64,000 nt of DNA from Macrostomum lignano (taxonomy: Eukaryota): NCBI GenBank assembly GCA_002269645.1, contig NIVC01000922.1, positions 186,001-250,000 on the forward strand, read 5' to 3'. A program made the position numbers and the translations under genes. Position 1 is the stretch's first letter; each line of letters begins with the position of its first letter. Positions 12,216-45,200 of the stretch are shown here, piece after piece. The notes under the pieces are model-generated. The model was not told the DNA's origin. It worked only from the letters and a program-made list of their open reading frames with translations, and ran no database searches.

Positions 12216-25676
<13,461 letters not shown>

Positions 25677-30915: not shown

Positions 30916-31771
30916 AAAATCCTGTTTGATTGAGTTTAAATTGTCTTCAAATGCTAGAGCGACTTGAAACTTGCTGGAAATTTAAGGAAACACGTAAAAT
31001 TAGTTGAATCGCGTTCATCAGCAAATCAAAAAACCCTCAAAAAGTAATTAATTTTGATAGTTGTCGATAGTATAATATTAATTGTAAGCTTTATTAAAAC
31101 AAATAAGTTCCGATTCCACGATTAATCTCATTGATTCGCTAAAACACAGTACGAGCCAGTACAAGACGCAAAAAAATCCTGGATTTCAAAGTTCTCGGCC
31201 CGCCTCTCCTCACGGTTTGGTTTAGTTTGCTCAAACACTGTTTGGGATTAGGTCTCTTCTCATTCTGGTTGGGAACCTTGGCCTCTAGCTTAGCTTTGCA
31301 TAGCAGATTTGAGGGGAGACAGGGAGAAGAAGGGAGAGGAGAGAAGGAGAGAAACACTAGGGAGAAAGAGAAGGAATGCAGAAATAAAACTGGCACTGTA
31401 TTTTCTGACAGGCCATGCTGCGCCAACCCCATGTTGAAGTAGCACGCACGCGCAAGCGCGCATTCTGGAGCTGTAACACGCTCGGGAGAATTCTCTGCGC
31501 TCTCCCTACTCGCACTACTGTGAGCGGCGCTACCCTATTGAGCCTTTTCTTACCCTTATTTTGGGCGTCGCCGCTTTCCTCACTCCACCACTTCCCCTCC
31601 CTACAACTCGTTAAAAATTAATCCCCCCAAGAACCACCCTCCCACAGTCCTTGAGACAATAAATAGATAAGCTAGAATAGCGGCGGTCAGAAGGCTCAAG
31701 AGGAGCAGCTTTAGTCTGGGGGTTGCAGCCGCTTAGACCGCTGAGTTTGGAACCCCGTGCATAATTCAGCA

Positions 31772-34700
31772 ATGCCCGGCCGAGACCAGTGGCCCGAGTT
31801 CTACGGTTTCGCGATCTGGGGCGGCGGCCCGGCCTACGTGATCTCAGTTGAGAAGGGCAGCATTGCAGATGAAGCCGGATTGCTGCCTGGCGATCAGCTA
31901 CTCGAGCTCGACGGAGACGATGTGTCCGGCTGCTCAGCCGAGGAGATCAAGCTGGCCGCTCGGCGTCGCCGCCTGCCCGGAGCTCCCACGGTTGGCGTGG
32001 TGTCCCGGATCCAGACTATGGAGATACCGTTCAACCGCCGACTGGGATACGGGTTCGCCATGCACGGCAGCAGGCCCATTGTGGTCAGCTCGGTGAATCC
32101 CTATGGGCCGTCTTACCAGGCCGGACTGAGAGAGGGTGAGCGGCGGTTTCATTTGCTGAAGGGAGGCTGCTGACTGTGACAGCATTGGGCGTAGCGCTCT
32201 CGGCGACATGGTGGCATAACGTGGGCTGATCGAGGCAATTCTGGGTGGATGTGAATCGTGCAAACTCCCCAAATTAATGTGCCCGAATCGAGCCAAAGTT
32301 CGTAGCGGTATCACAATTAAACTATACTGCATTCTGAATCTTACATGTACAATATGTACAATAGGATTTTAGGATCAATTCAAAATAATACTCATCTGGC
32401 CGCTTATATTGATAAATCCCAGGCGATGTTGTCCTTCAAATAAACGGCTACCACGTGACTTCACCGGACGTGGTGGAAACCATCTTGGCCAAAGCAGAGA
32501 AGATCGTGCTTGGCATTCTGGTGACGGCTAAAGGCGATGGCAGCGTAATTAGCAGCTCCGCGCATCACGGCAGACGATCTAGGGACAACAAAGCCAAGGA
32601 GCTCTTCACTAAGGTCAGCTGATTGACTATGAAATGTAGCTTGTACATTCAGGCATGTACATTTCAAGACATAGGATCTTAGACCCTTATCAAGTCGAAT
32701 TAAGTTAAATCAAGAGAATACTAATAGCTATTGAATCGATGCTATAGGTCAAAGTACAGACTCAAATGTACAATACGGATACATGTACAGGGATTGACTT
32801 AAATGGTGACAAAGGTAGTAGTTGAGTAACAGGTGAGATTGGAGTTACTCAGGATGGTACCGGGAGACTTGGATGAAAGTACAGTTATAGAGGGAGTTAT
32901 TGGTGCGACAGAAATCCGGATAAAGTGACAATCAAACTCAACTGAGCTTCAAGCGACCAATATGAATTTTCTAATCGATTAAAATTGGCTTGAATAAAAT
33001 TCCAACCAACAGTTAAACGGAATCCTGGGCGGCGATCAAGACAAGAAGATGTACGTGGTCGGCTTGATGAAGCAGTACGCCGAGGACCGGAATGTGCACA
33101 AATTTGCTGGCACTCTGCAGTCGTTGTTGTCCGCTCCGGAACATCGACCGATTGTGCAAGAGATTCGTGCGTTCGTGCCCGACAGGCATCTGCCGGTGTA
33201 CGACAAGATGCTCAGCCAGGATCCTCTGATGCGGGCGAGCACTGGCTCGATGGAATCGCTCAAGTCTACGCTGAAGTCGGCCTATCAGCCAACTTTGATG
33301 TCCGAGATCCCTATTCACTTTGATCCTGCCGACAGACGGTAATACGCCTGTCTGTTAGCCAGTGTCTTAGCCAGTGTCTTAGCCAGTGTTTTAGCCAGTA
33401 TCTTAGCCAGTATCTTAGCCAGTGTCTTAGCCAGTGTCTTAGTCAGTGTCTTAGCCAATGTGTTAGCGAGTGTCTTAGCCAGTGTCTTAGCCAATGTGTT
33501 AGCCAGTATCTTAGCCAGTATCCTAGCCAGTATCTTAGCCAGTGTCTTAGCCAGTGTCTTAGCCAGTGTCTTAGCCAGTGTGTTAGCCAGTGTCTTAGCC
33601 AGTGTCTTAGCCAGTGTCTTAGCCAGTATCTTAGCCAGTATCTTAGCCATTGTCTTAGCCAGTGTCTTAGCCAGTGTTTTAGCCAGTGTCTTAGTCAATG
33701 TGTTAGCGATTGTCTTTGCCAGTGTCTTATATATATATATAGCCAGTATCTTAGCCAGTGTCTTAGCCAATGTGTTAGCCAGTATCTTAGCCAGTATCTT
33801 AGCCAGTGTCTTAGCCAGTGTCTTAGCCAGTGTCTTAGCCAGTGTTTTAGCCAGTATCTTAGCCAGTATCTTAGCCATTGTCTTAGCGATTGTCTTAGCC
33901 AGTGTCTTATATATATCTTATATATATCTTATACTGGTATCATGAAGTAGAGGGATGTTCCATAAGTACTTATACTTTTGCATGCTGCTCAGGAACTACG
34001 CAACCAATCATTGTAAGTTTTATGTCGCTGGAAAGCGGCTTTACTCATCTTTAATCTGTCGCCAAAATCATTTCGTTCTGTCAACTATGTCAAAAGTTAC
34101 AACAAAAAACGTAGTCAAAGGTCACCCATAGACTTACAAGAAATTTTCAAAATCAAAACTTCAAAGTTCAGCACGCAGAGTTATTTCGGATTCTACATAA
34201 TGCATTCTTTTTTGCTTCATAAGCGAATGCCGCACCGTTTTCGTCTATGGAAAATACTGGCCTAAGCTTTCACAGCATCTTAATCTTAAGATCACAGCAT
34301 CTTAATCTTGTAAAGTTTCACCACCTTGGCTGCTGCTGCATCACCATGGATGTGAACTCAAGGGAAGGACAGCGCGCTGAAATTTTTACCCTCTGGAAAC
34401 TCGGAAAAAAGCGATCAGAGATTTATGCGGATTTATGCAACATTCATGGAGCTAATGCGGTGAGCAGGATGACCGTCTACAACTGGGTTGAGCAGTTCGA
34501 AGCAGGAAGGACCAATGTTGCTGATTTGCCGAGGTCGGGCCGCCCCTGCACATCAGGCTCTGATGCTCTCACCGATCGAATTCTTGATCTGCTGGACGAA
34601 GATTGTCGGCTAACGATTCGACAGATTGCAGATAGACTGGACACGCCGAGCACAACTGTGCATCGCTGCTTGTCGCGCATGGACTTTGTCAAGCTGACTG

Positions 34701-37700
34701 CTCGTTGGGTGCCACGCCTACTCACCTCGGACTTGAGACTGCAGAGGCAGCAGATTTGTCAGGCCAATATTCGGATGATGGAAGAATACGGTGGTTGGGA
34801 TCTCTTCCATCGAATGATAGTCACTGGAGATGAAACCTGGATTCCCCATTTTGATCCACCAACGAAACGTGATTCCCAGGTCTGGATGCTGAAGGGCTCT
34901 GATCCTCCGGTAAAAGCTCAAAGGGACGCACATGGAAAGAAGATCATGCTGTCTCTGTTTTTCGACTGCAATGGTCCTCTAACTGTCGAGTTTTTGGAGC
35001 CAAACACTACAATAAACTCTGAGCGCTACGTTGAAACGCTAACAAAGCTGCATCATGACATCCAGAACAAGCGTCGTGAAAATCCCAGACCTTTCATTCT
35101 TCATCATGACAATGCAAGGCCTCATACAGCACAAAAGACAGTTGAGGCAATCAGCAAGCTGAAGCTCCATCTTCTACCTCACCCTCCTTACTCTCCAGAC
35201 CTGGCACCAGCAGACTTTGCTTTATTTCCAGAGTTGAAGCGCCATCTGAAAGGACGCGTGTACGAGACCAGGAACCAGATCGAGGAGGAAGTCCGCAGAA
35301 TTCTGCTGTATGTCATCCCCCGACAGCTGTACGCAGAAGCCATCAAAAGCATTTTTAACAGGTGGACCAAGTGCATCAACTCCGGTGGAAACTACGTTGA
35401 GAAGGTGTCGGTACCGACTGAGGATGAGTGACAAAGAAGTCAAACTTTCTGTCATCAACAACGCGCCTCTGTTTTCATGCTTGCCATTGTAGTTGTTTCT
35501 CTTTAAATTTCTTGTAAGTCTATGGGTGACCTTTGACTACGTTTTTTGTTGTAACTTTTGACATAGTTGACAGAACGAAATGATTTTGGCGACAGATTAA
35601 AGATGAGTAAAGCCGCTTTCCAGCGACATAAAACTTACAATGATTGGTTGCGTAGTTCCTGAGCAGCATGCAAAAGTATAAGTACTTATGGAACATCCCT
35701 CCACGGCTGGCCTATCGTATATATAGGCCAGTGTCTTAGCCAGTGTCTTAGCCAGTGTCTTAGCCAATGTGTTAGCCAGTATCTTAGCCAGTATCATAGC
35801 CAGTGTCTTAGCCAATGTGTTAGTGATTGTCTTAGCCAGTGTCTTATATATATACATAGCCAGTATCTTAGTCAGTATCTTAGCCAGTATCTTAGCCAGT
35901 GCTAAGACACTCGCTAATGTGTTAGCGAGTGTCTTAGCCAGTATCTTAGCCATTGTCTTAGCCAGTGTCTTAGCCAGTGTTTTACCCAGTATCTTAGCCA
36001 GTATCTTAGCCATTGTCTTAGCCACTGTCTTAGCCAGTGTCTTAGCCAATGTGTTAGCGATTGTCTTAGCCAGTGTCTTATATATATATAGCCAGTGTCT
36101 TAGCCAGTGTCTTAGCCAATGTGTTAGCCAGTATCTCAGCCAGTATCCTAGCCAGTATCTTAGCCAGTGTCTTAGCCAGTGTCTTAGCCAATGTGTTAGC
36201 CAGTATCTTAGCCAGTATCCTAGCTAGTATCTTAGCCAGTGTCTTAGCCAGTGTCTTAGCCAGTGTCTTAGCCAGTGTGTTAGCCAGTGTCTTAGCCAGT
36301 GTCTTAGCCAGTATCTTAGCCAGTATCTTAGCCATTGTCTTAGCCAGTGTCTTAGCCAGTGTCTTAGCCAGTATCTTAGCCAGTATCTTAGCCATTGTCT
36401 TTGCCAGTGTCTTATATATATATCTTAGCCAGTATCTTAGCCAGTGTCTTAGCCAGTATCTTAGCCAGTATCTTAGCCATTGTCTTTGCCAGTGTCTTAT
36501 ATATATATATCTTAGCCAGTATCTTAGCCAGTGTCTTAGCCAATGTGTTAGCCAGTATCTTAGTCAGTATCTTAGCCAGTATCTTAGCCAGTGTCTTAGC
36601 AAATGTGTTAGCGAGTGTCTTAGCCAGTATCTTAGCCATTGTCTTAGCCACTGTCTTAGCCAGTGTCTTAGCCAATGTGTTAGCGATTGTCTTAGCCAGT
36701 GTCTTATATATATATATATATATATATAGCCAGTGTCTTAGCCAGTGTCTTAGCCAATGTGTTAGCCAATGTGTTAGCCAGTATCTTAGCCAGTATCCTA
36801 GCCAGTATCTTAGCCAGTGTCTTAGCCATTGTCTTAGCCAGTGTCTTAGCCAGTGTGTTAGCCAGTGTCTTAGCCAGTGTCTTAGCCAGTGTCTTAGCCA
36901 GTATCTTAGCCAGTGTCTTAGCCAATGTGTTAGCCAGTATCTTAGCCAGTGTCTTAGCCAATGTGTTAGCCAGTATCTTAGCCAGTATCCTAGCTAGTAT
37001 CTTAGCCAGTGTCTTAGCCAGTGTCTTAGCCAGTGTCTTAGCCAGTGTCTTAGCCAGTGTCTTAGCCAGTGTCTTAGCCAGTATCTTAGCCAGTGTCTTA
37101 GCCAATGTGTTAGCCAGTATCTTAGCCAGTGTCTTAGCCAATGTGTTAGCCAGTATCTTAGCCAGTATCCTAGCTAGTATCTTAGCCAGTGTCTTAGCCA
37201 GTGTCTTAGCCAGTGTCTTAGCCAGTGTCTTAGCCAGTGTCTTAGCCAGTGTCTTAGCCAGTGTCTTAGCCAGTTTTTTAGCCAGTATCTTAATTCAATG
37301 TCTTAGACTTATCTTCTAACCTGGGCGTGTCTTAGCGTCTTTTTTAGCTTGTGGCTTAGTGGGCCTGTTCTCAGCGTTAAAGTTGCAGATAAAAACTTAT
37401 GTCCATTGTCCATAGCAATGTCTTTTCCGGTTTTCTTTGGTTGGTCTTTGCGAGTATTTCGTGACCCGAGCATGCTTATCTGTCTATCTGTTCGAGCACC
37501 TCTGAGCCCAGCATGAGCACGCCTCAATCCCTTTGCAGCACCATCACGATCGACCGCAGCCAGAGCGGCAGTTTTGGCTTCATCCTACGCGGCAATCGTC
37601 CGGTATTCGTGGAATCCGTCGAGCACAACGGCTGCGCCGCCCGTTCGGGACTGCAGCCGGGCGACTGTATACTGAGGCTCAACGGACTGGATGTGTCTCA

Positions 37701-39265
37701 GTGTGGCCACAACCACCTGGTGGAGCTGCTGCAGAACAGCGGCTCCAAGCCGACGCTAGAAGTTTGCCAAACTGCTGAACTGGCTGCAGGTTCGTGCTTC
37801 ATGAGTCCGGGATCAGTGGTGTTGAAGAGATTCGGCAAGTAGATTGAATGATCTAGAACTAAACTGAAATGGAAGCGAACGAGGGAGCTAATAGATGGAA
37901 GGGACTGAACGATCGATAATCAACGAATTGTTTGTTCACTTGATTTTTTGTTTCATTGATTGGTTGATTAATCGATCGATTGGTTTATTAATTAATTATT
38001 GTTCGATTGATTAACACCCTCAGCCGCGGCCAGTCCCCAGTCGAACGGCCACTCGCATCAACCGCGCCACCAGAAGGAGCCCTCCTTCTCCAGCATGGAC
38101 TTCCACCTGGGCCCGGACGAGTCGCCAACCTCCGGGCACTCCCTCGGCTACGACGAAAGTGGCAAGTCGTTCAAAGAACGAGTCGACGAATTGCTAACTA
38201 AAACCGAGAAAGTGAAGCTCAAGGATGCATTGGAGGTCTATAGAAAGTCTAAGTGAGTTCCAAAATATCCGAGGAATTCCTGCAATTCACACGTGTACTA
38301 TCTGATAGTAAAATTGTTTCATCGTAGGCATCCTTAGTGTGGAATGCCATGAATATGCCTACAAACTGTTTGTTAGACTATGAAGGTAATTCCGATTGAC
38401 CTATAGTAGCTTAAAGTCAGGTTTTCACTCAATAAATAGTAGCCATTCGTAAAGGTTTTTTATTGTGTATCCTGCATTGCAGCCAGATGACGACGTTATC
38501 TTACTAATCTTAGAGCCTTATAATCGATTGTGTGCGAAGGCTGTGGGGGATCAGTGGAAGCAGCCTTTTTATTGATGGAAACGTTTGATACGAGCTAAAC
38601 TTGACTGACTGACTTCACTGCTGCGGTGCAGTGCAGAAGTGCAGAATATGGGACTAAGAAATATTTCTGTAAGGTTCCTACCCGTGGCGTTCTGTGTTTG
38701 TGTTTGTACCGGATACTCGTCCATAGCTCTCAGCTTCCAGGAAAGGATTGTGTGTTATTCTTGGAATCTAAATGTCTGTTTGACCTTTGCTGGCAAAGTT
38801 AACTTACTGATTTTGTATCAGTAAGAAACTGATTCGTACCGAGACGTTATCATAGTTTGAGAGCGTATCCGTTTTACCGTTACGTACTGATGTATTGGTC
38901 ATGAGAAACTACGCTATTCTTTAATTAAGCTTGTAGTAACATCACTAGTTCAATAAAGTTTTAAACGGCAATTTTACGCTCAATTTACCCTATGTAGAGA
39001 CATCGAGCGCTTTGCGGTTGATCTCAGTCGACTCTTTGACACGCCGAGCAAGCAGAGTCTGTGGCCCTATCTGCTGCCCAAACTGCCTAGAGAGCATCGC
39101 AATTTCTGCGCTCAGCACGCTCCAATGTCCCAGATGAGCTCGGCTCAGCTCAAACAGCTGGCATCACCTGATCGACAGCTGCCCAGAGCTCATTCGACAC
39201 CGTCACTGCAGCAAAGAGCACAACAGCAGCAGCAGCAACAGCAACCCAAAGAACAACAACAACAG

Positions 39266-39297
<32 letters not shown>

Positions 39298-42200
39298 ACA
39301 GCTACAGCTTGACCATCTGACTTCGTTCAAGCACCAACTCGAGTACTTGCTGACATCGCGGGAGAGAGCCCGACTCAAAAAGGCCCTCCAGCACTACTCA
39401 ACTCATCGAGACGTCAACGGCCTTATCGTTGATGTCTCGGAAATTCTGGACACTCCATCCAAGAAATCATTGTGGATGTACATCGTACCGCTGCTGTCTC
39501 CACATCATCAGAACTTCTGCAGGGAAAAGCTCGGCCTACCAGTCTCGGTTGGCACCTCCAGGCAGCCTGGCCGATCGGCTGACGGCGCTGGCGGAGGCGG
39601 AGGCGGTGCAAGGCCGAGGTCCTCCAGCCGAGGCCGAGACAATGGCACGCCACAGAGACGCCGCGCGCAGCCGCAGCACGCCTCCACCAGCAGCCTGGGC
39701 GGTAGGCAGCAGCCAGTCAGCTACAATCCGTTCAATCAGCCGCAGGAGGAAGTTGGAATTGAGGACGAGGATGAAGAATTTAGAATCTGTAAGGGTAGAT
39801 TTTCTTTAACTATTAAGCTTTAGTTTTTCATATTTTAATGCTTAGTAAACTATGATTAATGTTTCAGTTGGCAGAGCTGCTTCGCTGTTGCGAGATGGGG
39901 CCAGCTCGCGGGGACCCGCCAGTGTCGGGGTGAGTAATGATCCTTAAACATGTAGACGATTTTTCTGAGCATAAGTTGGTTTGTCCAAATATTTTGAGAG
40001 ATAGCTAGTGACTCAAAAAGTGACCCATCTAAAACCATAAGAGACGTTTTTGGAGACGCACCTGGTACCGGAAACTATGAAAGCCTGGCTTGATTCCACC
40101 TGACTCATATCACAAGTCGTAGCTCAGCGATGAGAAAGTCATGACAGCACTGAACATTGTGCACATTTAGGTAGTTCGTCACGTACCAAATTCACCATCA
40201 ACCTCAGCATACGCCCCATTCTCTCCAGCGTGACTTCACCTCGTCGAGTGACGACGAATTCCGTCGGTCGATCTCGCCGCCACCTCGCCAGCCGGGTGCC
40301 GCAGCGAAAAGTCGCGGCCGAACGCCTCAACGCCTTCGACAGGGTCAGCAGCGGCAGCAGCCGCAGCCGCAGCCGCAGCAGCGACGCCATCAGATGCGTA
40401 AGTCAAAGCAGCTTCCTACCGATGATGCAGACTCGCCATCTTCTGGCGCTGCGACGGCAGCAGGCAATCGACGCGCTGCCGACGGCAAAGAAGCCAAAGA
40501 GACGACTGTGGAGGAGGCGCCTCAAGCTAGGCTCATCAAATTCCCCAGCTACGCCTAATTTATCCCTTATGGCTGATAAACTTAGTAGCTAGCAACTATA
40601 GGGATGTTTCCTAGAAATGGGACTCATGCATAAGACGTTAGAAGGAGTCGATTTTATTCAAAGTGTCATTAACCCAAAGCCGCCGTCACCTCTATTATCG
40701 AAGTTTTGTTCAAGAGTAAAAAAATTCGCGCGAAAAAATCACGCAGCACGGTCACTCGGGTGTAATTTTTTACCATTCACGGATACGCAGTCACGGTACT
40801 AAAAGTAGAGTGTCACGATTAGTAAATGAGTATTTATGTTAAAAATATCAAGTGATTTTAATATTTTTTAGATTACTTGAGTTTATTTCTCTAGTCACAT
40901 ATTTTTAAAAAAATTTATCTTTTTATCACTTTAAAAACATTTAGTATGGAAAACATTTTTATAATATTTTATATAACATAGGGCATCGACGAAATGGCCA
41001 AAGTTGATTTTAGTAAGCAACGGAAGAAAGAGCTAGCTAAATTTCAGGCTTGAATGGTTTGTTCATTTGTCAGTGGCTTTTGTGGTGGGCACTTTTTATA
41101 GGAAAAACTCCTCAGTTATTTTTAATTGATCGTTTAATTAGAAAAATATAGGATTTCAGAACTAGAAAAAATTTAGAATCTTCATGCAGGCTCGTACAGC
41201 ATCTTGTATTTCGTTTTGATCTTCACAGAACCTCACTGGTAGTGACTGGCAATTTTGCGAAGGTTTTGAAACTTTGTTAAAATCGACACTTTCGGGTTTA
41301 AAATGTCGCAAAAATCACTGGATGACTGCGCAAACGAAAGCCATTGACAGAACAAGAAAGATGACCGCCTTCAGGGCTGTTTTAAAAAAATGTTAAGGAA
41401 AAATCAACTTTGGTAAAATTTCGATTGAAGCTCAAATCTTACGTCACAAAAATCATTTTGTTTAAATGTTTAAAAACCTTTCCTATTTTTAACCATTTCA
41501 AAACAAAACCCAGTTTTCCACTCGCATAGAATTTTTAAAAACTACAAAATTTCCGTCCTTGTAACATTCTATGTACAGAAAATACTCGCAGCTATAAACT
41601 GACAAACGCAAATTTAATTGTCATTTTCAATATTTTCCAATAAACGAGATTTACTCCTGACGGAGTAAAACAAAAATTCACAGAAATAAATAAAAGTTAT
41701 AAAAAATGGCAATGTTGCTTCAACCGAAATCCTGCAATACTTATCTTTTCAAATTTATTTTGTACCGACATATTTGGTTATTTGGTTCAACCTGTAAATG
41801 GCTTTCGTTGTGCAAAAATTAACGAAATTGTTTTAAATAGTTAGAGAAGCATTATAACAAAACCTTCTACTTCGATTATAGTCTTATGAGCTACGTGCTT
41901 GCGCAAATTATTTGTGAATCTGCCTGATACTACAGAGTAAACACTTAGAATACCCGAGTGACAGCTGCGTGGTTTGTTCTTATAAAAAACTTCCTAGTCT
42001 GGGTCAGACTGGTGGAGAGATGTCGCGATGCCGTACGGTCGTATTAATTTTTTTAATACGCTTACGGTATTTGCTTCTGAATCTTGTGCAGTTTAACATA
42101 CAGAGGGAAAGTTCGTGAATTTCCCTCTCCTCTCTGTCTAGAAATGGGGATATTGAAGAGCAAGTGTAAGCATTTATATGTGCATAGCGACTTTTCGAGT

Positions 42201-45200
42201 TAACGCGTGAACCAAGGATCTCACTAGAAGTTAATAAGGACAGGAACTTTGATTCTTGGAAAGATTGAAGGCCTATCCCTTTCTTTTTTAAACTTAAACG
42301 ACAAGGTCTTTTAAAGCTATGAAACTGATGGTTGATCTCGAGCTCCATTTGGTAGTTCGTTCCAACTCAAAGCTGGACGAGTTGACTAAATGGGCCTTAT
42401 GCCAATTTTTGCTTTAACCTAGAGGACCTCGAAAATTTGAGCCACAAAGCTTCAGCAGAGCCTTAGAAGATTCTATTAGCTAAGAGTCATCGCAAATAAG
42501 TCCACAGCAAAAACAGACAGGAAGCGCTCTGACACGTGCGATAACGGCTCGCAACTGTAAATGCACATGCATTTGATATCTTTCATGCATAGCCACTCTA
42601 TGCTATGAACGCTGAGCATGACTACAGCTTGACTTCTGGCTGGCTCCGGGTCGACTGTCACCTTGATTGCGGCTGAGCCCACTGGCCGATCAAGAGGGGG
42701 GTCAATGGGGTCGGCTGACCGCCCGGGAAAAATCATGGATCCGCCTCTCTCTGAGTTCAATGCCTCGCCGAGACTAACAAATTAATACACCTTAGTACCC
42801 TCAATTCTTAGTCCAAAATCTCCTTGAAGTAACAGACCTCATCAGACTCTCACTCAGTTGATCTAATCTTGCTGCGACTGACCTTTTGGGTTTCCGAATT
42901 GGGGACGATTTTGTTACTCACGCTTCAGGCTCAAACTAAGATCAGTCTCACTAGAAGCGAGCTCAAACCAATTCAACCCCACGCGCAGATTTCGGTGTCA
43001 ACCAGCCGGACAAAGGTGACAACGTCGTTGAGGCCGTCCTGCTGACCGACAGCGACTACGACGGCTACGACTCCGACACTGATGACGAAGACTTCGACGA
43101 CAATGAAGAGGATCGAGAGTCGATTGTGTACGACCTGCCTGCTAGGAGTCTGCGCGACGAGGACGAGCTGGACGATGAAGAAGGCGGCCCTGCCGCAACG
43201 TCATTCGGCGTTGCCATGGCAAGACGGCGACGTCGGGAGAACAGCGATTTAATTTTCCGAATGAACGGCGAGCCGGTTGATCGAAATCAGCTGCCGCCGA
43301 ATGCTAGACTAGTCTTAGTTGATCCGGACAAAGACTGGCTATTGTTCACCGGCAACAATGCCGAGAAGGCCAACGAAATTCTACGCGCCCAGGAATCGAT
43401 GGACGCCCGGGCATTTCGCGCGATGAAGGCTTTAGACGATGTTGTTGATGGAGCCGAGGATGGCGCTGCTTCGCCGGCTGCAGGGACGGCGGCTGCCGCT
43501 GGCGGTGCACGAAATTCTCAAGCTGCACCGCCACCGCCGCCTCCTCCACCACCTCCGCCTCCGCCGCCACCGCCGCCGCCACCGCCGCCGCCGCCTCCGC
43601 CGCCGCCGCCGCCAACCTGGCTGGAAGCCGGCAATCCGGGCCAGATGAACGTCCGCCGCCTCAACTGGGAGAAGCTCGAGTTGAACAACCTCGGCGAGAC
43701 GATCTGGGGCCAGATCAGCGCCGATAGGGCGCTAAGCGAGGTGGTGAACTATCTGGACATTGAAGGCCAGTTCGCTGTGAAGAAGCCGAAACACACTCCG
43801 TCTATTGTTGACAAGCACTTGGCCAAGAAGGATATCTGCATACTGAATGGCAAAAAGGCGCACAACATCGGTAAGTTGGCTGCTGTCTCAACATGCGGCA
43901 GAAGGATTACCCTGAAATGCTGATCACCGCGCCACATTTCAGCCATTCTTCTTGGCCACCTGAAACTGCCAATAGCTGAGCTAAAAGCTGCCCTTTACAA
44001 CATGGACGAGAGCATCTACACCGCCGAGTTGCTGCAGCAGATGATTCGATTTGCGCCAAGCTCAGACGAGGTAAAAACATCGATTTCTTTTCTCGCTCGT
44101 TAGGTCTCTGGAGTGCTCAAGTGAACTCTGAAGTGCTTTTGGAAACTTAGAAGGGCTCTTCTTCTGCAGGACTCTGAAGTGACTTTAAAGGGCTCTAGAG
44201 GACTCTAAAGTGCTCCTGGAGACTTTTAAGTGCTCTACAGAGGACCCTGGATTGCTCTTGAGGAATCCGAAGTTCTTTTGAGACATCTGAATTATTGCTT
44301 TTCGGTAGAAATGCGTTGTCGGTAGAAAGCTCTGAAAGGTTTTAGAATCATCCAATGGGCTTCTGTTTCTCGAGTACTTTGAGCTCCTTCCAACCAACGG
44401 CAACTATTAGAGTCACTCTCGATTCCAGATTGAAAAATACGACAACTACAACGGGCCGGTGAGCAAGTTGAGCAAGCCGGATCAGTTCGCCTACGAGATG
44501 ACTCGCGTGCCGGGCTACGAGCAGCGGCTGCGAGCGATGCTGTTCAAGCTGAACTTCTCCGAGAAAGTCGAATCGATTCGCCAGACTCTGCTGACTGTTC
44601 AGCGGGCCAGCAGGGAGCTGTGCCACAGCGACAAGCTGGCCAGAATTCTAGAGATGATTCTGGCGATGGGGAATTTTCTTAACCAAGGCAACAACAGGAT
44701 CGGTGGCGCTCAAGCTATAAAGATCTCGTCACTGGCTCGGGTTGGTTCAGTGCTGGGTACTTGAGTTGGTCGGTTCCTTGTAAAAAATGAGTGTGTCGGA
44801 CATGCGGAATTGAAAAACTCCCGGTCTACGATTCCGAATAGGGCAGTCCCAATCTCAGGTGTTTAATAAGGGAAACCTTTCTCTCGTTCAATAGGGGAAT
44901 CCCAATCTCAAGCGTTTGATAGGGGCAACCCCTCTCTCGTTCATTAGGGGAATCCCAATCTCAGGTGTTTAATAAGAAGGGAAACCCCTCTCTCGTTCAG
45001 TAGGGGAATCCCAATCTCAGGTGTTTAATAAGAAGGAAAACCCCTCTGTAGTTCAATAGGGGAATCCCAATCTCAAGTGTTTGATAGGGGAATCCTCACC
45101 TCAATCATCCAATAGGGCTATCCAATCTCAGTTGTTTCATAAGAGAAGTCCCTCTCTCGTTGTTCGATAGGGGAATCCCAATCTCAAGTGTCTAATAGGG

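Follow-up and report, generated by a model that had tools for sequence, protein, structure and literature searches.

The locus studied here lies on contig NIVC01000922.1 of Macrostomum lignano, where a 64-kb window (the whole stretch of DNA that was analysed) contains a mariner inside an intron of a delphilin-like gene. The insertion site is a (TA)n run within a 12-bp host satellite (unit TTAGCCAGTGTC), which Tandem Repeats Finder places at 33355-33909 on the left (period 12, 46 copies) and at 35727-37292 on the right. The left flank (33906-33933) consists of two copies of CTTATATATAT followed by CTTATA and ends in the flanking TA (33932-33933); when the TA runs of the array were listed, this 11-bp tandem duplication was absent from every other one. 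The right flank (35718-35731) begins with TA (35718-35719) and a (TA)n run and continues into ATAGGCCAG, the putative template of one of the spacers described below. It carries a GG variant of the satellite (TAGGCCAGT) that occurs once, versus 119 copies of TAGCCAGT in the array. A unit of 1784 bp is bounded by TA on both sides inside a TA run. In-silico removal of 33934-35717 joins ...ATCTTATA to TATATATAGG..., the same satellite-like junction that the first-pass annotation had obtained, and the rejoined (TA)n run resembles the eight other runs in the satellite array.

The transposase gene (34346-35431, plus strand) is intact and encodes 361 amino acids followed by a stop codon. Its product matches HTH_48, HTH_32, Transposase_1 and DDE_3, with the N-terminal bipartite helix-turn-helix of Mos1 type represented by Pfam HTH_48 (residues 13-54) and HTH_32 (43-106), both over their curated cut-offs. 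Mos1 transposase (3hos) can be aligned with it from end to end (E=1.4e-41), and the catalytic aspartates D162 (34829-34831), D255 (35108-35110) and D290 (35213-35215), counterparts of Mos1 D156, D249 and D284, are invariant in alignment A1. Counted on the translation, 34 residues separate the second and third Asp. The element shares with Mos1 and other classical DD34D mariners this full-length alignment, the HTH_48, HTH_32 and DDE_3 domains and the DD34D spacing, as well as a WVP(R/H)(L/E)L linker motif (here WVPRLL instead of WVPHEL), a TA-run target and terminal inverted repeats around the transposase gene (197 nt perfect, 227 nt at 94%). It differs in that Mos1 has repeats of 28 bp and the terminus CCAGGT, while those of the window element are ~200 bp long and of the CGAGGG type, and in that the TA of the window copy stands 16 bp from the repeat at both ends. 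The earlier description of the element as an intact DD34D mariner is therefore upheld by reading frame, domains, Mos1 alignment and catalytic residues. Judged from its sequence, the element is autonomous and belongs to a clade of DD34D mariners whose terminal inverted repeats are ~200 bp long and whose canonical terminus is TA|CGAGGG.

The left arm of the inverted repeat (33950-34146, plus strand) corresponds to bases 2-198 of the family terminal repeat and is homologous to the repeats of the three relatives introduced below; the right arm (35505-35701, minus strand) was delimited by comparing the arms with each other. They show no mismatch over 197 nt, the first one inward falling at 34147/35504, so that 394 bp of paired arms contain zero mutations relative to each other. 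A repeat search lengthens the arms to 227 nt at 94% complementarity, and the left repeat persists in degenerate form as far as 34173. The repeat tip occurs at only these two places in the window, against 0 expected by chance.

Neither repeat is flush with a TA target-site duplication; a TA sits 16 nt outside each of them. On the left, the order is TA (33932-33933), C (33934), 15 nt (33935-33949) and GAGGG; on the right, it is the mirror image, namely CCCTC, 15 nt (35702-35716), G (35717) and TA (35718-35719). The C on the plus strand at 33934 is probably base 1 of the canonical CGAGGG, left on the flank, since relatives read TA|CGAGGG, and the G at 35717 is, on the minus strand, the complement of that base; each adjoins its flanking TA and is set 15 nt off GAGGG or CCCTC, rather than being contiguous with both. 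Directly outside the repeats stand TA on the left (33948-33949) and CA on the right. The left spacer is TGGTATCATGAAGTA (plus strand) and is not complementary to the right one, which reads CACGGCTGGCCTATC on the plus strand and was assigned to the minus strand. Outward from GAGGG, the spacers agree at 4/15 positions, which is chance level, and agreement resumes at positions 16-20 (C, TA and AT in this order). In the inward direction, the right spacer together with 35717 reads CGA-TAGGCCAG-CCGTG, and 35715-35717 (TCG) is identical to the three canonical bases that close the element. The first-pass annotation had reported the perfect 197-bp repeats with TA-C-N15-GAGGG at both termini, the repeats that are not flush with TA on both sides (the right one being followed by CA) and the 16 non-complementary bp between each repeat and its TA; our reading of the sequence and the arm comparison agree on every one of these points.

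The closest relatives with visible ends are unnamed long-repeat mariners on metagenome contigs, L001 and L003 (JGI 3300059358) and L002 (ENA ERZ23496033), whose transposases are 69% (L001), 62% (L002) and 61% (L003) identical to that of the window copy. They share with it inverted repeats of 120-200 bp and conserved blocks at the tip, at GAAAGCGG and, further inward, at CCCATAGACTTACAA. In alignment A2, homology between the window repeat and theirs runs inward from GAGGG for ~205 nt; invariant columns span the tip motif GAGGG.(T/C)GT(C/T)C.A.AAGT, GAAAGCG and TTACA blocks add to them, and the spacer is absent from the relatives. Their repeats are 93-97% complementary and flush at TA|CGAGGG, in contrast to the perfect arms and the 15 extra nt between C and GAGGG of the window copy; a flush TA|CGAGGG[GC].GTCC is found at 5/5 visible ends (both of L001, both of L003 and the left one of L002). 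Among 30 more distant mariners, 53 of the 60 ends show a CGAGG-like terminus immediately after TA, which bears out the earlier remark that many mariners start TACGAGGG, and a set-in repeat was seen at none of the 60. A scan of metagenome, viral and prokaryote collections for the exact repeat tip gave 0 matches, and the exact transposase was absent from the protein records searched. The highest identity of any protein found was 69%. Because the relatives are flush, this comparison demonstrates, at the level of sequence, that the spacers are 15-nt insertions relative to the normal end of the family, separating base 2 from base 1 (C) at the left and right termini alike. The missing flush TA is an anomaly of the junctions of this copy and not of the transposase family.

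Long inverted repeats as such have precedents. Mcmar1 of Meloidogyne is a mariner-like element with inverted repeats of hundreds of bp. The LTIR-like elements of aphids are also mariner-like with inverted repeats of this order, but they are DD40D/DD41D and related to rosa/maT, in contrast to the DD34D signature and CGAGGG-type terminus of the window element (PMC5490172). A terminus of this type, like that of the window element, is found in the terminal repeat of the aphid irritans-subfamily element Dnomar3.1 (PMC5490172).

Within the right spacer, CTGGCCTAT (35707-35715) repeats flank positions 35723-35731 (ATAGGCCAG) exactly and in inverted orientation. This flank segment, the reverse complement at a distance of 7 nt, is the single other occurrence of CTGGCCTAT in the 64 kb, and the copied segment includes the satellite variant private to the locus, found once in ~120 units. 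A match of 9 nt was equalled by 11/20000 shuffled spacers and 19/20000 random 16-mers (p ~0.001); there are 11 local palindromes of this kind in the whole window. These matches indicate that the right spacer is of local origin, made at this locus. For the left spacer, a search within +/-2 kb gave no significant template, 180/200 shuffles scoring equally well. The first-pass annotation had compared both spacers with inverted satellite: the resemblance is borne out on the right and fails on the left, where the 7-mer ATACTGG leans on flank bases and is not significant. Its preference for filler from junction repair likewise holds mainly for the right junction, given the flush relatives, the inverted copy of a private flank variant and the CGA start, and lacks a significant template on the left. 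The two spacers have CTGG(CC)TATC in common in direct orientation (p ~0.09). Elsewhere in the same array, a snap-back-type scar with 17-nt inverted arms (35901-35917 and 35922-35938) stands by itself, with no transposon; it indicates that inserts of such size and kind do occur in this array.

The balance of this evidence tips towards a history in which transposase cut the ends of the element and the host then rejoined each of them in place, adding templated filler. The mariner would first have entered a TA of the (TA)n run in the Macrostomum satellite by ordinary insertion. Later, its ends would have been cleaved by its own transposase or that of a sister copy, either as two single-end breaks or as one double-end break; the intact ORF with all catalytic residues makes such a source of cleavage plausible. 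The cut would have been staggered, the transferred strand being cleaved at the junction itself and the non-transferred strand 3 nt into the element, leaving the flanks with TA and up to CGA as a 3' tail and the element ends with a 3' tail of bases 1-3. Instead of transposition, each element end would have been rejoined to its own flank by error-prone end joining of the polymerase-theta type: tails trimmed by 0-2 nt would have been lengthened by brief, aborted copying of nearby DNA, the flank tail on the right snapping back onto itself as template, before a final annealing through ~1 nt of homology. The element would thereby stay put, with ~15 nt of filler separating base 1 from base 2 on either side. 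The CGA at the inward start of the right spacer, together with the GAGGG kept on the element, would reflect survival of both 3-nt tails of the staggered cut, with bases 2-3 present twice. We infer that transposase was the maker of the breaks and that this pathway repaired them.

The intermediates and the type of repair that this history calls for have counterparts in studied systems. Mos1 makes a staggered 3-nt cut and reads the terminal bases and the flanking T sequence-specifically (PMC4344528). Single-end-break intermediates of Hsmar1 accumulate at physiological pH (PMC2800235); these and its nicked intermediates (Claeys Bouuaert & Chalmers 2010, PMC2800235) resemble the proposed lesion, with a double-strand break at one transposon end and the other end attached, but were obtained in vitro on plasmids, and that paper describes no repaired in vivo product of this kind. 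In the germ cells of C. elegans, polymerase-theta end joining repairs Tc1-induced breaks, and 24% of the deletion products carry templated inserts from nearby sequence, with junction homology of mostly 1 nt (PMC4490562). The polymerase-theta excision footprints of Tc1 and Mos1 (van Schendel et al. 2015, PMC4490562) are similar to the window junctions in keeping TA and terminal transposon bases on the flank and in having inserts copied near the break with ~1 nt of junction homology. They differ in being what remains after the element has departed; in the window the element is present and each junction has its own scar. The C. elegans repair data concern element loss, unlike the element kept here (PMC4490562).

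Several points weigh against rejoining in place. If the two repairs were independent, net insertions of exactly 15 nt at both would have to coincide by chance, at odds of roughly 1 in 15-30. For the left spacer, no significant template was found nearby, so that the evidence for templated filler comes from one side. Complementary 3-nt tails should usually religate precisely, and a single copy with two imprecise rejoinings is expected to be rare. The right-junction palindrome may also be older than the insertion, as the array has another without a transposon. We know of no documented case in which a Tc1/mariner element was retained in place with filler at both ends.

An unlikely alternative is that a linear mariner excised elsewhere was captured: host end joining would have ligated it into an unrelated double-strand break within the (TA)n run, each junction receiving filler. 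On either side the element begins at GAGGG, short of exactly base 1, as would an excised fragment with its 3' tails trimmed by 1 nt (PMC4344528); a right filler templated by the local flank fits any end joining at the site, and the TA run masks whether a TA was duplicated. However, capture would make the TA-C/G-TA symmetry accidental, although the C beside the left TA and the CGA beside the right one match the canonical terminus (chance ~1/4 x 1/64), and it leaves the equal 16-nt spacing unaccounted for.

We consider it very unlikely that, as in the other option offered by the first-pass annotation, the spacers are intrinsic and present in every copy, either as outer 16 nt that differ between left and right or through cutting 16 bp outside the binding motif. 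The exact symmetry, with 16 nt and then TA on both sides and C/G outermost as in canonical termini, would fit such ends, as would the position of the whole 1784-bp unit between TAs of a TA run, where a normal mariner insertion would lie. Yet every relative is flush, and the tip motif GAGGG.TGT.CCA.AAGTA is intact but displaced, so that bound transposase should cut at its edge and not 16 nt off. The 197-bp arms are identical, yet the outer 15 nt are unrelated; their agreement at 4/15 bases argues against recognition of both by one homodimeric transposase, and Mos1 reads its terminal bases and flanking T sequence-specifically (PMC4344528). Imported spacers, moreover, should not mirror a flank variant private to the locus, as the right one does (p ~0.001). 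We give little credence to the particular version in which the spacers are working ends, of a lineage that cuts at TA|C 16 bp outside a conserved binding motif and carries two unrelated captured 16-bp flank fragments. If it were true, a mariner could change the register of its cleavage and transduce DNA from its flanks, which would revise the assumed strictness of cut-site choice by mariner transposases.

It is also quite improbable that an island of ~32 nt of rearranged or inverted satellite (CTGGTATCATGAAGTA/CACGGCTGGCCTATCG) already lay in the TA run and that the mariner landed near its middle, non-canonically. The second inverted-satellite palindrome in the array without a transposon (35901-35938), the TA directly preceding the left repeat and the direct-orientation motif shared by the spacers would agree with an island. 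This history, however, treats the equal distances to the TA runs as coincidence, and the right repeat adjoins CA instead of TA while both ends are without base 1; a missing C, a missing G and an altered duplication would be needed in a copy with 394 mutation-free bp of repeat, and 0/8 other TA runs of the array hold such an island. An artefact of assembly or consensus building where a long inverted repeat borders on satellite is scarcely credible: satellites and long inverted repeats do assemble poorly, and Logan contigs of the relatives break within repeats, but the structure is internally coherent and its spacers, which lie at two separate sites, are 15-mers of complex and non-repetitive sequence, neither homopolymer errors nor chimeric joins to other window sequence.

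In conclusion, GT-A on the left and GT-G on the right now occupy the cleavage positions and the bases next to them, in place of the canonical TA-C, and with this replacement the window copy should be a poor excision substrate, yet one that still encodes transposase. In Hsmar1, changing the flanking TA to TG stalls cleavage after the first nick (PMC2800235). We further infer that the copy has become immobile and that its spacers are unique to it. The element adds a long-repeat DD34D mariner to the catalogue from a regenerative flatworm model, and its ends offer a defined junction pair for the study of templated end joining in Macrostomum. If the ends were indeed cut and rejoined in place, the copy would be a natural record of abortive mariner excision whose end breaks were repaired in situ, an event that has been inferred from single-end-break intermediates in vitro and is rarely seen in genomes. 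It would also illustrate one route by which an intact, transposase-encoding copy is locked in place, having lost the flanking TA and the terminal base that second-strand cleavage requires. Such a locked copy could still supply transposase to others, which would bear on the self-regulation of mariner invasions.

The element at 33934-35717 is an intact mariner, as the first-pass annotation had read it: an open reading frame at 34346-35431 encodes a 361-residue transposase with HTH_48, HTH_32, Transposase_1 and DDE_3 domains, which aligns over its full length to the Mos1 transposase (3hos, E=1.4e-41), and its catalytic aspartates, D162, D255 and D290, make the element a DD34D mariner. An in-frame ATG upstream, at 34247, would add 33 residues, and an 18-bp direct repeat of period 22, TCACAGCATCTTAATCTT, is found just ahead of the transposase start, in the 5′ untranslated region (34270-34309). 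Position-by-position comparison of the arms also bore out the description of 197-bp perfect inverted repeats set 16 bp inside a TA at both ends. From GAGGG at 33950 to its complement ending at 35701, the arms run for 197 nt without a mismatch, the first falling at 34147/35504; a repeat search lengthens both to 227 nt (94% complementary). The left end reads TA (33932-33933), C (33934), 15 nt and GAGGG, and the right end is its mirror image, with CCCTC, 15 nt, G (35717) and TA (35718-35719). Outside the arms, 4 of positions 1-15 are complementary, which is chance level, and positions 16-20 (C, T, A, A, T) are complementary again. Neither the window element nor its relatives contain a significant direct repeat of the Sleeping-Beauty-like IR/DR type, in which the tip motif has an inner copy.

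The nearest proteins among 5.8 billion clusters searched are 57-69% identical and lie on short metagenome or Logan contigs. Element ends are visible on three metagenome contigs: L001 (repeats of 120 nt, 97%), L003 (200 nt, 93%) and L002, which shows the left end only. At all five of these ends, TA is followed immediately by CGAGGG[GC].GTCC.A.AAGT. The window arms are homologous to those of the relatives for ~205 nt from GAGGG inward, the relatives having no spacer, and the tip, GAAAGCGG and CCCATAGACTTACAA are conserved blocks throughout. A further 30, more distant mariners were recovered together with flanks; at 53 of their 60 ends TA is directly followed by a CGAGG-like terminus; a set-in repeat is present in none of the seven exceptional ends, all of which look like point changes. 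Since close and distant relatives alike are flush, the canonical end is TA-CGAGGG. Compared with this terminus, the window copy has gained a net 15 nt between base 1 and base 2 at each of its ends. The element itself is a DD34D mariner of a long-repeat, CGAGGG-terminus clade. Logan unitig contigs with related long-repeat mariners (L085-L090 and L004) all break off within the inverted repeat, their arms reaching both contig ends, so that such assemblies systematically lose transposon flanks.

Within the window, the 26-nt repeat tip (at most 3 mismatches) occurs only at the two ends, with 0 matches expected by chance, and a blastn comparison with the whole element returned only itself, with no further copy or fragment. 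The exact tip had no match in metagenome contigs, viral contigs or prokaryote genomes, and exact-sequence look-up found neither the 361-aa nor the 394-aa product on record. Protein-pattern scans yielded only mariners of at most 43% identity in the metagenome, none in viral contigs, and in genome contigs only relatives of at most 43% identity, representing eukaryote contamination in MAGs. Short contigs in bacterial MAGs labelled Chromatiales, Sedimenticola, Vampirovibrio, Leptonemataceae and Bacteroidetes (L091-L094, L096 and L098) carry full-length mariner transposases 34-37% identical to that of the window; these are most likely animal DNA binned into the MAGs. The literature yielded nothing usable on a described Macrostomum mariner or on the string TACGAGGG.

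The mariner interrupts a 12-bp satellite (33355-33909 and 35727-37292) that is punctuated by (TA)4-12 runs. It is inserted in one such run, and deleting 33934-35717 does restore a (TA)n run, as had been claimed. Mariner and satellite are intronic in a delphilin-like gene, whose orientation the mariner shares; its plus-strand exons (31745-44761) encode PDZ, harmonin-N-like and FH2 segments and are 96% identical to a Macrostomum lignano UniRef protein, which assigns the window to this flatworm or one closely related to it. Minus-strand exons at 13100-19963 encode the kinase and C2 segments of a classical protein kinase C. Between and within introns, the window (1-64000) has over 30 distinct arrays of mini- and microsatellites, with units of 4-60 bp and many of them 0.3-2 kb in length, a density that fits the very repeat-rich Macrostomum genome. 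M. lignano is a hidden tetraploid (PMC5704211).

On balance, the odd ends are probably one-off repair scars. The right spacer (35702-35716), taken inward with 35717 included, is CGA-TAGGCCAG-CCGTG. The 9-mer CTGGCCTAT within it (35707-35715) recurs just once in the window, in reverse complement at 35723-35731, on the far side of the TA run and 7 nt off; the satellite variant at that match, TAGGCCAGT, occurs once, against 119 copies of TAGCCAGT. A match this long to the adjacent 30 nt arose in 11 of 20000 shuffled spacers and 19 of 20000 random window 16-mers, and only 11 local palindromes of like quality exist in the 64 kb. The flank match, the private variant and the rarity of such palindromes together argue that this flank, at this locus, was the source of the right spacer. 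The spacer opens with CGA, equal to bases 1-3 of the canonical terminus, and as the element side still starts with GAGGG, bases 2-3 are present twice.

The left spacer (33935-33949), TGGTATCATGAAGTA, has no template above shuffled controls within 2 kb on either side, by k-mer and Smith-Waterman comparison of both strands. The earlier leaning towards junction filler is supported mainly at the right, where the spacer matches its own flank; the satellite resemblance proposed at the left (ATACTGG against CCAGTAT) relies on flank bases and is not significant. A patchwork of CTGG..TATC, taken from the extended right tail, and AT(G)AAGTA, taken from repeat bases 13-19, is statistically unsupportable as the source of this spacer and is not claimed. 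The left flank (33906-33933) contains an 11-bp tandem duplication, CTTATATATAT twice plus CTTATA, which the array's eight other TA runs all lack; it may have arisen during the same repair or by ordinary slippage.

Mos1 cuts the transferred strand precisely at the junction and the non-transferred strand three bases into the repeat (PMC4344528); a staggered cut of this type leaves the flank with TA plus a 3′ tail made up of element bases 1-3, and the element end with a complementary 3′ tail. Single-end-break intermediates of Hsmar1 accumulate at physiological pH (PMC2800235). In germ cells of C. elegans, polymerase-theta end joining repairs the breaks that Tc1 induces; 24% of the deletion products have inserts copied from nearby sequence, and junction homology is mostly a single nucleotide (PMC4490562). 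We propose that transposase cut both ends of an originally canonical insertion, which was then resealed in situ with filler. At the right junction, the flank tail ...CTGGCCTATATATACGA-3′ would have snapped back onto its own TA run, copied TAGGCCAG and re-primed once, adding CCGTG; the extended tail would then have paired through ~1 nt with the 3′ tail of the element, whose terminal base was lost as a flap. At the left, TA-C would have been kept and followed by 15 nt of filler. The right junction fits mariner cleavage chemistry; we infer that transposase made the breaks and that a polymerase-theta-like pathway repaired them.

The scar model has no explanation for the equal net insertion of 15 nt at the two ends; were the repairs independent, such equality would be a chance event at the level of a few percent. 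Should CGA have been kept by the right flank and only C by the left, the new filler is 13 and 15 nt, and the equality may be only apparent. To our knowledge, no documented Tc1/mariner copy has stayed at its site with each of its ends carrying filler.

Capture of a linear excised copy, ligated into an unrelated break in the TA run, would account for the trimmed ends and local filler but leaves the C and CGA beside the TAs unexplained, and we consider it unlikely. Intrinsically asymmetric ends or offset cleavage are improbable, given that the relatives are flush, the conserved tip motif, though displaced, is intact, the outer ends do not resemble each other, and the right spacer corresponds to a flank variant that only this locus has; a shifted cleavage register in this mariner is likewise improbable. 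Equally improbable is a pre-existing 32-nt island in the TA run into which the mariner landed, as this needs a non-canonical insertion, with base 1 absent from both sides and no proper TA duplication. An assembly artefact is very improbable for two complex 15-mers. Point mutation of TA-C to GT-A and GT-G was rejected, requiring six substitutions beside 394 bp of unmutated repeat. A degenerate 18-bp target-site duplication was rejected too: the TA-plus-spacer segments are 9/18 identical in direct orientation, and 436 of 5000 shuffles equal their local alignment CTGG(CC)TATC.

A perfect palindrome also occurs in the satellite 180 bp downstream, at 35901-35938, with 17-nt arms (GCTAAGACACTCGCTAA and TTAGCGAGTGTCTTAGC), a 4-nt loop and no transposon nearby. 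It repeats the neighbouring satellite unit in inverted orientation and looks like an independent templated insertion of the snap-back type. Inserts of this kind and size therefore arise in the array, and the right-junction palindrome could in principle predate the mariner.

The bases now at the cleavage positions are GT-A and GT-G, in place of the canonical TA-C. For Hsmar1, changing the flanking TA to TG stalls the reaction after the first nick (PMC2800235), and by analogy the window copy is predicted to excise poorly. Such a copy would still encode an intact transposase.
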